Assembly: GCA_002269645.1 (NCBI GenBank)
Contig: NIVC01001003.1
Coordinates: 62,001 to 126,000 of the forward strand
Direction: 5' to 3'
Origin: Macrostomum lignano
Taxonomy: Eukaryota
DNA: 64,000 nt
Shown here: positions 47,390 through 56,529 of the stretch, piece after piece
Position numbering within the stretch: position 1 is the first letter of the stretch
Layout of the letters: every line of letters starts with the position of its first letter
Notes under the pieces: model-generated
What the model was told of the DNA's origin: nothing
Seen by the model: the letters and a program-made list of their open reading frames with translations, nothing else
Databases searched by the model: none
Position numbers and translations under genes: made by a program

Positions 47390-48950
47390 TTAAAATTTCT
47401 ATCGTCTCTTCTGTTTCCTCTCTTCTCTCTCATCCCTCGTCTCTCCTCTCTCCTCTCTTCTCTCATATCTTCCCTCATCTCTCTTCTCTTTCATCTCTCT
47501 TATCTCTTGTCTCTTCTCTCTACTCTTTCCTCTCTCTCTCCTCTCTACTTTTCGTTTTCTCTCTTCTCTCCTCTCTCCTGTCTCCTCTCTACTTTTCGTT
47601 TTCTCTTTCCTCTCCTCTCTCCTCTCTACTCTTTTGTTTTCTCTCTCCTCTCCTCTCTCCTATCTTCTTTCATATCTTCCCTCATCTCTCTTCTCTTTCA
47701 TATCTCTTATCTCATCTCTTCCCTTTTCTTTTCTCTCTCCTCTCCTCTCTCCTCTCTACTTTTTCGTTTTTTCTCTTCTCCTCTCTCTCCTCTCTCCCCC
47801 TCTTCTCTCGTCTCTTCTCTCACCTCTTTCCTCTCCCTCTTTCCTCTCATTTCTTTTCTTGTTTTATCTCTTCTCTCTCCCCTTGTCGCTTGTCTCTTCC
47901 CTCACCTCTCCTCTCTCTTGTCTGCCTTTATATCTCTCCTTTCACTTCTTTTATCTTTTCTCTCTTACCTCTTCTTGTTTCTCTCTGCTCTGCGCGCTCT
48001 CTATCTCTCTCTCTCTCTCTCTCTCTCTCTCTCTCTCTCTCTCTCTCTCTCTCTCTCTCTCTCTCTCTCTCTCTCTCTCTCTCTCTCTCTCTCTCTCTCT
48101 CTCTCTCTCTCTCTCTCTCTCTCTCTCTCTCTCTCTCTCTCTCTCTCTCTCTCTCTCTCTCTCTCTCTCTCTCTCTCTCTCTCTCTCTCTCTCTCTCTCT
48201 CTCTCTCTCTCTCTCTCTCTCTCTCTCTCTCTGTCTCTCTCTCATCTCCCATCTCTCTTCTCCTCTCTACTCTCTCCCCTCTTCATTCTCCTATTTCCTC
48301 TTCTCTCTCCCTGTCTTTCCTCTCTCCTCTAGTCTCTGTAATCTCTTCTCTCTTATCTCTCCTCTGTTCTCTCTACTCTCCCATCTCTCGTCTGTTCACC
48401 CTTATCTCTGCTCTCTCATCTGTTATCTTTACTCTCTAATACGTTCTCTCACTTATCTCCTCTGTACTCTTCTCTTTCACCTCTTCTGACTCCTCTCTTT
48501 CCTTACTCCTCTCTTCTTTTTCTTCCCTCTTCTATACTCTCTCTCCTCTATTATCTTCTCTCGTCTCTCTGCACTCTCCTCTCACCTTTTTCATCTCTCA
48601 TCTTTACTTTCTCATCTCTCCTTTCATTTGTCTCATCTCTACAATCTCATCTCTCCTTTCTCCCCTCTTCTTTCACCACTCTCTTATCTCTATCTCTTCT
48701 CTTCTTACTCCTCTCTCCCCTCTTATCTCCTCTCTACTCTCTCCTCTCTAATCTCTCCTCTCCTCATGACCCTCTGTCATTTTCTTTCTGCTCTCTCATC
48801 TCTACTCTCTTCTCACTCTTCTTTACTCTCCTCTCATCGATCCTCTGTCTCATCTCTCCCCTCTTCTCACCTTTACTCTTTCCTCTCCCTCCTTTCTCCC
48901 CTCCTCTCGCTTCTTCCTCCCTTCTTCTCTGCTCTCTCCTCACCACTTGT
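47390..48950. repeat. Polypyrimidine tract including a pure (CT)n run of ~230 bp
   Basis: Its distal part recurs at ~50070-50945, 52245-53125 and 54420-55300. Confidence 0.95.
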
Positions 48951-48951
48951 C

Positions 48952-50066
48952 TGCTGGCGCACATCGGCGACATCCGGCACGCCCGTGACACTCCGGTGGC
49001 CCGCCATTTCACCAGTGATGGCCACAGTCTGGCGGACTTCGCCTTCACCGGCATCTGGTCTCGTGACGGCACGGGACCCAGAGCGAACGAGCGGCGGCAG
49101 CGCCACGAGGCCAAGCTCATCGAGGTGTTAAAGACTCAAACCCCGCACGGCGTCAATGAGCTTGCCGGCACGCTGCACAACCCGGCCATCCCGCTGATCC
49201 TGCCCCATTGTGCGAGGGGACGCCCTGGTGGCCGCGGTGAAGGACCGCGTGGCCCGGTGCTGCAAGGCGCCGGTGCTGCCCGCCTACACCAAAGGGCGGA
49301 ACCTCCGGCAGCTGCTCTGTCCCAGTCGACTGGAGTCCACCACTGATTGAATTTTTGTATTTTTTCCTTTTGATTTTTTACTTCACTTTCCCTTCTACTT
49401 ACCTTTGTCAGACCGTGCCGGTACCTACCAAGCCTTTTGTTGCTCCTTTCTTAGAAATTTTTTTATTCTCATCGCTAGCCCAAGCTCAGCTTTTGTATAT
49501 TCTCAGCATTTATTCTGCATCAACATTTCTATTGTTTCTTGACACCCTGTACTTTTTATTACACTTTTTACTTTTACTCTTTTGCTTATCGTACAATTGC
49601 TCTTTTTTAAGTTTTTGAGGGCCTTTCACCTTATTTATTTATTTATTGATTTACTGCTTATTTATTTATTGAGGTCAATTTTGTAAAGTGCTTAGAGTCA
49701 CTCTTTCCCCTTTTTAGACACCGGTGCAGTCGCACTATTCCATTATTTATTTCGTGTGTAGGATCGCTGCAGCCCACGTGCGGTTCACTTTATTTGTGCA
49801 CTGTTTTTTATTTTGCATTTTCAACTCTAATAGTGTTTTATCGACTCACACCAAGTGTACATACCGTACGCTCTCTATCTACCTGCCTACTCTCTCTCCC
49901 CTCTAACCCGCCTATTTAATAACTTTTACAACACCACTTGTCGCTACTACTTTTCACTTGCCCTGACGAAGAATTTACCTAATTCGAAATATCGGCAACT
50001 TAAATCATCTTGACTTGTTTGTCCTTTTTACATGTACCGTGTCCGTGCCTGAGATTGGAGGCGCCC
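48952..50066 (+). mobile_element. Penelope-like element 3' fragment, copy 1 (further 5'-deleted, 2-nt deletion)
   Basis: Near-identical to copies 2 and 3 from MLAHIGD onward; carries the 3' UTR and hammerhead. Confidence 0.8.
49958..49998 (+). ncRNA. Minimal type I hammerhead ribozyme, copy 1
   Basis: TTGCC-CTGACGA-A-GAATT(TACCT)AATTC-GAAA-TA-TC-GGCAA: stem I, core with one extra A, stem II, GAAA, palindromic ATAT stem III; predicted cleavage after C49993. Confidence 0.85.
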
Positions 50067-54420: not shown

Positions 54421-55301
54421 TCCTCTCTCTCTCTCCCTCTCTCTCTCTCTCTCTCTCTCTCTCTCTCTCTCTCTCTCTCTCTCTCTGTCTCTCTCTCATC
54501 TCCCATCTCTCTTCTCCTCTCTACTCTCTCCCCTCTTCATTCTCCTATTTCCTCTTCTCTCTCCCTGTCTTTCCTCTCTCCTCTAGTCTCTGTAATCTCT
54601 TCTCTCTTATCTCTCCTCTGTTCTCTCTACTCTCCCATCTCTCGTCTGTTCACCCTTATCTCTGCTCTCTCATCTGTTATCTTTACTCTCTAATACGTTC
54701 TCTCACTTATCTCCTCTGTACTCTTCTCTTTCACCTCTTCTGACTCCTCTCTTTCCTTACTCCTCTCTTCTTTTTCTTCCCTCTTCTATACTCTCTCTCC
54801 TCTATTATCTTCTCTCGTCTCTCTGCACTCTCCTCTCACCTTTTTCATCTCTCATCTTTACTTTCTCATCTCTCCTTTCATTTGTCTCATCTCTACAATC
54901 TCATCTCTCCTTTCTCCCCTCTTTTTTCACCCCTCTCTTATCTCTATCTCTTCTCTTCTTACTCCTCTCTCCCCCTCTTATCTCCTCTCTACTCTCTCCT
55001 CTCTAATCTCTCCTCTCCTCATGACCCTCTGTCATTTTCTTTCTGCTCTCTCATCTCTACTCTCTTCTCACTCTTCTTTACTCTCCTCTCATCGATCCTC
55101 TGTCTCATCTCTCCCCTCTTCTCACCTTTACTCTTTCCTCTCCCTCCTTTCTCCCCTCCTCTCGCTTCTTCCTCCCTTCTTCTCTGCTCTCTCCTCACCA
55201 CTTGTCTCTCTTCTTATCTTCCATGTTTGCTCTTATCCCCCTCTCGCCTCTCCTCTCTTCTAATCCTTCTCCTTTCCACTCTCATCTGGCCCACACATAA
55301 G

Positions 55302-56529
55302 CTAGATTCTTTATCTGGCTTTTGAAGTAAAAGTCTGCCAATCCCTGCTTTGAAAGCCAGTTTGTGGGACGTACTACTCTCATCGTTATTCTCATGCTTT
55401 GATCACGTCATCTTTCTTGCCAATTTGCAGCCCTGAAAGGAATTTGTGTATCTTCAGCTCCACTGCAGTCTGCATCAGTCTAACAACCAAGGAAATATGC
55501 ATTTCTTAGGCCATTTAAATTTAAAGTACTTTTAAGAGAAACTTAAAATTTCAATGGTGTGCCTAATTTAGTAGGGTTGTATTTCATTGCATTGCATTGC
55601 CTTTTCATAAATCTTTTGCTTTTACAAACCATGCTGGATTGCCTCAATTTGCCAATTGCCATCCACTGTTAAACTGTTGCAGAGTTTGCCTATACAGAGG
55701 GGAGGGCAGTGGTTAGAATTTCTCACTAAATTGTTATCGCTAAACATAGCCTCTCCACTCTCGGGGTGCGAGATTGCGAGAAGGCTATAAATAAAGTTAT
55801 TCCAAAACACTGTACATTTGCTATCTACATTCAATCCTATCGTCTGATCCTTTGTCTGGCTCTGGGGGAATGAGTGAGTGAGTGGCACAAACAACAGAAA
55901 AAGCAGACAAACTTCACATGCTTACAGTTTCCGTCCTGATTGAGATACAGAGTTTAGACTTTACATTTAGACAGAGAATGAGTCAATGAAGAATTGTGTC
56001 AAGTTTGAAGTCAATCGCTTCACATGGAGCAAACTTATGGCAGCTGAAAGTTAGTCAATTTTGAAACCCTTTTACACATCTGGGCCCAGATTGGTATTGG
56101 GAAAGAGAGGCAGGCGGGCAGAGGTTGGGATAGTTGCTACGTTAAAAAAAAACAGCCTAACTTTAAACGTGCACAGCACCGCTCAGGATTAATTTTGAGA
56201 CTCAAAAATTTATATAATTGTGCTAAAATAGTTTAAGATTATCTGTGTCAAATTTGAAGAGAATCAGTAGAAGTGGAGCGGCACTATGGAGGATTAAGTG
56301 AAAAAATTGCACATTTTAAGCAGTTTTTTATACTTTTAGGTAGGAAGACTTGAGTCTAGGAAATTTAAAGGTAGCCTAAGACATTCTCCGTAGTAAGTTT
56401 AGGGTGGGTGTAAAGTTTGGTGTCATTTGGTTGAGTGGTTTGGGAGTCCATAGCGATCAAAATTGTACACACACATACACACACACACACACATACACAG
56501 ACAGAGTTTTGATTTTTATATGTAGAGAT
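55302..56529 (+). mobile_element. Probable non-autonomous Helentron/Helitron-associated element (HINE/DINE-like)
   Basis: Starts CTAGA followed by a short hairpin (CTTTT-GAAGT-AAAAG). Ends with AAGTTTGGTGTCATTTGG..(CA)n..TTTTATATGTAGAGAT, an end structure typical of such elements. Recognised by pattern only. Confidence 0.5.

Follow-up and report, generated by a model that had tools for sequence, protein, structure and literature searches.

Penelope-like elements (PLEs) are known for an insertion bias toward microsatellites, for tails and for 5' truncation (PMC8557442). In Metazoa, they carry a minimal hammerhead ribozyme (min-HHR) characterized by a short helix I of 4-5 bp, an unpaired nucleotide between A9 and G10.1, a G10.1-C11.1 pair and a palindrome at positions 15.2-16.2, and the position of this palindrome in place of helix III implies that the ribozyme acts as a dimer (PMC4209133). 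The present analysis concerns a tandem array in a 64,000-nt stretch of the Macrostomum lignano genome (assembly GCA_002269645.1, contig NIVC01001003.1, positions 62,001 to 126,000 of the forward strand; hereafter the window, in whose own numbering coordinates are given). In this array, the 5'-truncated 3' end of a PLE, termed X, is present three times and alternates with a segment composed of (CT)n and pyrimidine-rich DNA, the latter termed B. The preferred explanation, to which a probability of about 0.6 is assigned, is one PLE insertion with a target duplication of ~880 bp, followed by expansion through unequal crossover or slippage.

Several described systems resemble this locus. 5'-truncated PLEs with a min-HHR in the pseudo-long terminal repeat (pLTR) (Cervera & de la Pena 2014, PMC4209133; Craig et al. 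2021, PMC8557442) share with it a C-terminal GIY-YIG remnant, a min-HHR in which helix III is palindromic and a nucleotide bulges out ahead of G10.1, a tail some tens of nucleotides long, a microsatellite neighbor and microhomology at the 5' joint. The window departs from them in that the fragment is tripled together with 0.88 kb of apparent target DNA, in that neither an upstream partial copy forming a pLTR nor an inverted copy is present, and in its probable target, (CT)n, the cases named in PMC8557442 being (TA)n, (CA)n and (C)n.

Animal non-long-terminal-repeat retrozymes (Cervera & de la Pena 2020, PMC7229834; Li, Clavereau & Pollet 2026) likewise form head-to-tail repeats with a type I hammerhead in each and share a derivation from the PLE terminal region; for the birth of such repeats, the 2026 study explicitly proposes that a 5'-truncated PLE end is amplified locally through unequal crossover (bioRxiv 10.64898/2026.07.22.740005). 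Compared to these non-coding units of ~170-400 nt, the unit in the window measures 2176-2178 nt, holds a 578-nt remnant of an open reading frame (ORF) and 882-885 nt (40%) of host DNA, and is present in only three copies. Its hammerhead is of the minimal PLE type and theirs of the classical type I, and while it is known from the sequence of one locus alone, retrozymes are dispersed and occur as linear and circular RNAs.

In the Penelope elements of Adineta vaga (Arkhipova et al. 2013, PMC3846280), as in the window, PLE terminal segments are separated by ~1 kb of DNA that does not belong to the element. There, however, the spacers are unique captured sequences within a mobilized unit with target-site duplications of 8-10 bp, whereas the spacer in the window repeats the immediate flank and the outer boundaries coincide with insertion junctions. 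From the general model of satellite birth by unequal crossover, cited in the 2026 preprint, the window differs only in an unusually long founding target duplication.

Structure of the array and identity of X

Searches of the window by blastn with the unit 49994-52169, a repeat finder and a four-way alignment concur in placing a head-to-tail repeat with a unit of 2176/2178 bp at 48005-55303; the same unit serves as the reference for array coordinates. From left to right, the array consists of (CT)114 and B, followed by three repeats of X, (CT)25-26 and B, and a unique flank (AGATTCTTTATC...) begins at 55304. X measures 1294 bp in its reference copy (Table 1), comprises the remnant of a GIY-YIG ORF, a 3' untranslated region (UTR), the min-HHR and a tail of ~73 nt, and is 99.7-100% identical among its three copies. 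The (CT)n and B segment occurs four times, with a length of 882-885 bp and 88% pyrimidine, and the leftmost CT run is pure. By blastn, 48165-48952 corresponds to positions 73-859 of the unit (99.7% identity), 48952-49993 to positions 1133-2176 (99.8%), 52170-54347 to a second complete unit (99.7% to the reference) and 54348-55303 to positions 1-955, after which the unique flank follows. X is in direct orientation throughout, with host DNA between the copies each time and an identical truncation point; no inverted copy is present in the array, and blastn detected no further copy of X or of the unit within the 64 kb.

The original prediction, made from the sequence alone, had described (CT)n-B followed by an endonuclease (EN)-UTR-hammerhead block, three times over and closed by (CT)n-B, with nearly identical copies, monomers of 2176 and 2178 nt and ~870 bp of pyrimidine-rich DNA. 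This anatomy agrees with the measurements given here, and its three-copy repeat is real as assembled, but the first copy proved incomplete. In that copy, 273 bp are gone, namely the final 96 bp of B and the initial 177 bp of X with its EN remnant, and an additional 2-bp deletion is located at 49217/49218. X copy 3 has a 1-bp deletion after 53493, which shifts the frame, and A>G at 53618. As for the intervening segments, the third (CT)n has one CT unit more, an extra C is common to the third and fourth B copies, and the four-way alignment reveals two substitutions in the fourth. The second B copy is of the right-hand type near its start (50082 C versus 48182 T) and of the left-hand type around position 550, as the extra C of copies 3 and 4 is missing there.

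Such private differences in each copy, including the 273-bp deletion in copy 1 and the substitutions in copies 3 and 4, argue against an assembly artefact, in which a true locus with one or two copies of X would have been over-expanded by the assembler as a near-identical repeat. The suspicion is understandable given the near identity of the copies, the low-complexity setting in a genome that is one third tandem repeats, the resemblance of several differences (1-2-bp indels) to long-read errors and the fact that PLE tandems are known assembly troublemakers (PMC8557442). Nevertheless, no gaps interrupt the sequence and the 64-kb window contains no Ns, so that an artefact is considered rather improbable; even a single X between two B copies would keep the main conclusion.

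The coding remnant of X relates it to PLEs. An exhaustive HMMER scan returned 2188 relatives of the window ORF, the best of the matches being a 977-aa protein with reverse transcriptase (RT) and EN (P0002), to whose residues 719-907 the ORF is 82% identical. It is 76% identical to P0001, a protein from Logan contig L001 whose upstream frame is an RT fragment with a YIDD box, and 91% identical over its last 58 residues to a Macrostomum lignano UniRef protein, its closest named relative. The match to the Pfam GIY-YIG family is weak (E 0.0099; 16.6 bits versus a family cut-off of 22.6), and identity to the EN of a 1005-aa ORF on a more remote contig, L002, is 27%. DNA homology between X and L001 begins at GCTGCC, and because this start lies within the Cys/His (Zn-knuckle) linker preceding the GIY-YIG domain, X is a 5'-truncated 3' end of a PLE and a non-autonomous fragment. 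These identities of 76-91% to RT and EN proteins bear out the Penelope origin proposed for the EN-UTR-hammerhead block. The claim that RT is absent also held, as tblastn with the L001 RT fragment detected none in the 64-kb window.

Only in copy 2 does the frame stay open, from the B/X junction to its stop codon. Since no start codon precedes its GIY-YIG catalytic motifs and B contains an in-frame stop immediately upstream (50906-50908), it is an open ORF remnant and not an intact endonuclease gene. The intact endonuclease frame originally proposed for this copy is accordingly right as to openness, but the frame is 5'-truncated in the Zn-knuckle linker and without a usable start codon. Exact-product look-ups yielded no records elsewhere of the window EN ORF or of two spurious UTR ORFs, and a literature search for Macrostomum PLE descriptions gave nothing specific.

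Two further observations were made on this protein family. PLE fragments of the X family are found fused into predicted host proteins (the Macrostomum-type gene models P0002, P0004 and P0009); in one aldo-keto reductase model (UniRef A0A1I8FFW6), the 58 C-terminal residues of the PLE ORF stand at the beginning. Such PLE-host gene models are likely annotation chimeras caused by 5'-truncated insertions. In addition, a conserved linker motif (vPLiLpH ... PvLPaftKGRsLRkLLc.SrL) follows GIY-YIG at the extreme C-terminus in the PLE family of the window (window 51350-51523; P0001 residues 190-248), and the same motif (VPLVVSYHP...VPMVAFRRPTSLKDMLVHS) precedes the Zn knuckle and GIY-YIG in L002 (ORF residues 780-843), L003, L009 and L012. 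Since many relatives of 700-760 aa match the query via this C-terminal part, the module order seems to be typical of the clade and not a peculiarity of this locus; the pairwise support is weak (E 0.54).

The hammerhead motif and its relatives

The 31-nt core of the hammerhead, CTGACGAAGAATTTACCTAATTCGAAATATC, has exactly three occurrences, ending at 49993, 52169 and 54347 and thus spaced by 2176 and 2178 nt. Its elements are UUGCC / CUGACGA / A / GAAUU-UACCU-AAUUC / GAAA / UAU / C^GGCAA, with the core CUGACGA / GAAA / U-C and 5 bp in each of helices I and II. A min-HHR descriptor built on the traits given in PMC4209133 and applied to both strands of the window retrieved only the three array sites and none in 200 dinucleotide shuffles; being copies of one event, the three sites are counted as one independent occurrence. 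The minimum free energy fold of a 47-nt segment consists of exactly helices I and II, and RNAcofold of two hammerhead copies produced a domain-swapped duplex, which is uninformative on helix III. No match to the Rfam hammerhead families was obtained with gathering thresholds over the whole window or with E<=10 in the 161-nt region 49900-50060, as expected for a motif that has no helix III hairpin.

Pattern scans detected the hammerhead in two contigs of a mis-binned 'bacterial' metagenome-assembled genome (MAG) and in 27 metagenome contigs, with 0 matches in viral contigs. Because these scans constrained only the core and helices I/III, helix I and the core are fixed in the set used for covariation. 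In helix II, by comparison, three of the six pairs show compensatory changes on both sides among 16 distinct relatives, pairing holds in 94.6% of cells, and the covariation score was not reached in any of 500 shuffles. The bulged A between A9 and G10.1, the closing G10.1-C11.1 pair and the palindromic AUAU (15.2-16.2) are shared by the window, all 17 related variants and a further contig, L031, which is the best control, having been found via protein homology alone (EN 55% identical). The hammerhead of L031 reads GAAAAGCC / CUGAAGA / A / GGAUU-GAAA-GAUCC / GAAA / UAU / U^GGCUUUUU; relative to the window, the changes are compensatory, as UU..AA has become AA..UU in helix I, and an A-U pair has become G-C in helix II. 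It lies ~330 nt past the stop codon, as in L002, compared with ~610 nt in the window.

The minimal type I hammerhead with a palindromic stem III, as originally predicted, is thereby upheld by the traits defined in PMC4209133, by the shuffles, by covariation and by L031. The motif can be regarded as a genuine, conserved minimal type I part of PLEs, and the hammerheads of the window as inherited PLE parts, whose activity at this locus is only predicted. As a separate observation, three metagenome contigs (L005, L017 and L024) contain head-to-head hammerhead pairs on opposite strands, 10-30 nt apart; such pairs represent the inverted-pLTR arrangement described for PLEs.

Target DNA and origin of the array

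The 3' end of related elements can be located relative to their hammerheads. In L002 (CBDDTI010000339.1, 16001-19644), the intact 1005-aa ORF (Pfam RVT_1 and GIY-YIG) lies between two hammerheads 3497 nt apart; the 3' hammerhead is followed by 33 nt, after which the insertion ends against (TA)n, while the upstream hammerhead runs past the same 33 nt into the element body. Across 33 related hammerheads, 12 are followed by (TA)n, which begins at +30-34 nt in eight, at +50 in one and at +84-87 in three. The insertions of relatives hence stop at two alternative points, +30-34 or +84-87 nt past the cleavage site, and these match the optional 'tail' described for PLEs (PMC8557442, PMC3846280). In L031, ~80 nt separate the hammerhead from a (TCAG/TCAT)n microsatellite that continues to the contig end; in the window, ~73 nt separate it from (CT)n. 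Because the elements of relatives end 30-90 nt past the hammerhead, abutting a microsatellite, (CT)n is read as the target, and B would be the host DNA that follows the target, not cargo. The suggestion in the original prediction that B is host DNA thus gains support from the relatives.

On the origin of the comparison contigs themselves, L002 and L003 (CBDDTI010000562.1) are filed as 'MAG: bacterium', with the L002-type ORF embedded in (TA)n; both are almost certainly eukaryotic DNA binned into a bacterial genome.

A different view of the repeated segment would start from a pre-existing host array of ~880-bp (CT)n-B units, one of which X entered before the X-bearing unit spread. The region is rich in tandem repeats, and B is nearer to neighboring CT-rich DNA than shuffled controls are: its alignment with the CT-rich tract on the left scored 288, compared with 232 +/- 11 for shuffles (z about 5). 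An unrelated CT-rich tract at 23.7 kb, however, scored 403 compared with 332 +/- 12 (z about 6), so that the test is not discriminating, and the likeness of B to the left tract probably reflects composition and not shared descent. Moreover, no X-free B/(CT)n junction remains, and the insertion site of X would have had to coincide with the border between two units. Such an older array is considered extremely improbable. The idea of B as a degenerate PLE 5' region was also rejected, given the lack of RT similarity and a pyrimidine content of 87%.

The preferred reading of one insertion with a long target duplication draws mainly on the junctions. Both array boundaries are insertion junctions: on the left, the array merges with the host (CT)114, and on the right, it passes at the B/X junction into the unique flank. 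A founding stage of the form B-X-(CT)n-B is required because two simple histories fail at these ends. If X had entered (CT)n and X-(CT)n-B had then been duplicated in tandem, the left end should read (CT)n-X; if X had entered at the boundary between B and the flank, the right end should read X-flank. Both histories are ruled out by the absence of these arrangements. GCT at 50946-50948 is common to host and element, and GCT also forms the final three bases of B before the unique flank; the 5' truncation joint of X therefore looks microhomology-mediated, as is known for a PLE in Adineta vaga (PMC3846280).

We infer the order of events, the mode of the first 880-bp duplication and amplification at the DNA level as follows. 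A 5'-truncated PLE copy would have been inserted via target-primed reverse transcription into the host (CT)n, with the 3' end of X primed from a nick within the (CT)114 run; the copies of the right-hand segment start ~33 units before the end of this run, which would be the site of the first-strand nick that primed the cDNA. The 5' end of X would have been joined ~880 bp downstream, at ...CACATAAGCT^AGATTC, through the 3-nt GCT microhomology, and the ~880 bp of target between the two breaks, comprising (CT)n and B, would thereby have come to lie on both sides of X. The resulting 880-bp direct repeats could mispair, and two rounds of unequal crossover or replication slippage would raise the number of X copies from one to three. 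The 273-bp deletion, the two small deletions that shift the frame and a handful of point mutations would have come later.

Direct repeats around a transposon insert mispair and expand during the birth of tandem repeats, and neighboring copies share variants. The second B copy may be a recombination hybrid, with the make-up expected if the right repeat on one chromatid had crossed over with the left repeat on its partner, a weak hint of such exchange. Because the neighborhood is one third tandem repeats, with mini- and microsatellite arrays accounting for 32.5% of the window, tandem expansion, slippage and unequal exchange are common there. The junctions thus favor what the original prediction had named as its alternative, namely a single insertion whose very large target duplication was expanded through unequal crossover.

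Several points weigh against this scenario. The natural 3' end of the exact PLE family in the window is taken from relatives and not observed, and the crossover hybrid involves two informative sites, with which three of four possible patterns would be compatible. Target-site duplications of PLEs are short, 8-10 bp, or missing when a microhomology joint is formed (PMC3846280), so that a duplication of ~880 bp would be exceptional, with no PLE precedent at hand. PLEs also form tandems and take up host spacers of 0.9-1.5 kb during integration (PMC3846280), and the B-X-B stage, or even the entire array, could have arisen from one PLE-mediated event rather than stepwise.

In its full form, this last possibility ascribes the alternation of X and target to a single retrotransposition, with template switching between the RNA and nearby target DNA. 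It accords with the finding that PLE insertions are typically partial tandems with tails (PMC8557442), and with Pen1 of Adineta vaga, which has host spacers of 0.9-1.5 kb from the element body to the 3' pLTR (PMC3846280); the spacer observed here measures 0.88 kb. Unrelated host sequences also lie between Adineta vaga pLTRs (PMC3846280). The published spacers, however, are unique sequences and not repeats of the flank. All three copies of X share both an arbitrary 5' truncation and the GCT joint, which repeated independent template jumps would hardly reproduce, and the graded variants among the B copies resemble recombination hybrids. Integration in one step is thus judged unlikely.

The original prediction had preferred a retrozyme-like origin, with captured host DNA and amplification through a circular RNA. 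Spelled out, a 2.18-kb transcript would be cut by dimeric hammerheads, circularized and reverse-transcribed in rolling-circle mode by a PLE RT acting in trans to yield the array. The three tandem hammerheads are of a validated type and in the same orientation, a circular-RNA, more-than-unit model exists as a proposal both for PLEs (PMC4209133) and for the non-LTR retrozymes of animals (PMC7229834), an origin of retrozymes from PLE terminal regions has been argued (bioRxiv 10.64898/2026.07.22.740005), and autonomous relatives are present in the likely host lineage. The ends of the array speak otherwise: its left end lies within the host (CT) run and its right end precisely on the B/X junction, whereas an array derived from a circle would be free to end anywhere in 2176 nt, and a rolling-circle product reaching this boundary would be a coincidence of ~1 in 500. 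In addition, the unit is 5-13 times longer than the ~170-400 nt of known animal retrozymes (PMC7229834), cleavage by PLE min-HHRs in vitro is poor even for dimers (PMC4209133), helix III would consist of only four A-U pairs with the sites 2.2 kb apart, and no second copy of the unit was found within 64 kb. The founding step would also stay unexplained, as two hammerheads presuppose a first duplication.

With array ends that are insertion junctions and a (CT)n-B segment that reads as target, amplification through circular RNA is neither needed nor supported and is regarded as quite unlikely. It is very improbable, too, that the locus represents a retrozyme or satellite at birth, in which a PLE 3' end and its flanking repeat would have become a kilobase-scale hammerhead unit producing 2.18-kb circles, dependent on RT in trans, that is, a 'giant' retrozyme carrying host DNA.

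Genomic setting and implications

The array and the genes recognized around it are listed in Table 1. Its location between the DCAF17 exon and the Bcl-2-like exon places the array either within a 5' intron of DCAF17 or in intergenic DNA. Mini- and microsatellites form about 32 arrays in positions 1-41000 and 60600-62350 of the window, each 0.3-1.5 kb long with units of 3-50 bp, many of them between or within GC-rich exons. One family with a 28-bp unit, GGCCCAGCAACTGAGGATCTGGGAGGCT and variants of it, is found at 9733, 12816, 14391 and 19782.

Table 1. Components of the X array and neighboring genes, in window coordinates
Feature	Position	Strand	Remarks
SAPS / PP6 regulatory subunit exons	12044-16854	-	Pfam PF04499, E 6e-22
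DCAF17 exon	39229-40086	-	PF15802, E 6e-17
Host CT-rich low-complexity tract left of the array	47400-48004	+	Direct reading; TRF reports 47405-48868 as one degenerate CT-type array
Host (CT)114 microsatellite, putative first-strand-nick target	48005-48232	+	Right-hand ~33 units form the start of the duplicated segment
B copy 0, apparent left copy of the duplicated target	48233-48952	+	Final 96 bp removed by the 273-bp deletion
X copy 1, without its initial 177 bp	48953-50066	+	EN remnant, 3' UTR; hammerhead 49958-49998, cleavage after 49993; tail 49994-50066
(CT)n and B copy 1, 882 bp, putative hybrid	50067-50948	+	Right-hand type at position 14, left-hand type at ~550
X copy 2, reference	50949-52242	+	EN ORF remnant 50949-51526, stop 51524-51526; 3' UTR 51527-52133
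X copy 2 hammerhead	52134-52174	+	min-HHR, cleavage after 52169; tail 52170-52242
(CT)n and B copy 2, 885 bp	52243-53127	+	One CT unit and one C extra
X copy 3	53128-54420	+	Hammerhead 54312-54352, cleavage after 54347; tail 54348-54420
(CT)n and B copy 3, 883 bp, apparent right copy of the duplicated target	54421-55303	+	Continues directly into the unique flank
Bcl-2 family-like exon, weak	61732-62679	-	E 9e-5, below cut-off

Overall, the locus is a new instance of known things, combining a truncated PLE with a min-HHR, microsatellite targeting and local amplification, and by itself it opens no new question. That the PLE min-HHR is conserved in a flatworm-type lineage gains modest further backing, of an independent kind, from the comparison of hammerheads. 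If the preferred explanation is true, the array would provide a worked example of PLE integration beside microsatellites and of the first steps by which a 5'-truncated PLE end and its flank turn into a tandem repeat, both of which have already been described or proposed. Its sole unusual trait is the target duplication of ~880 bp, which is far beyond the 8-10 bp reported for PLEs. Should duplications of this size recur in the X family, they would inform how far apart the GIY-YIG nuclease places its two nicks in repetitive targets.

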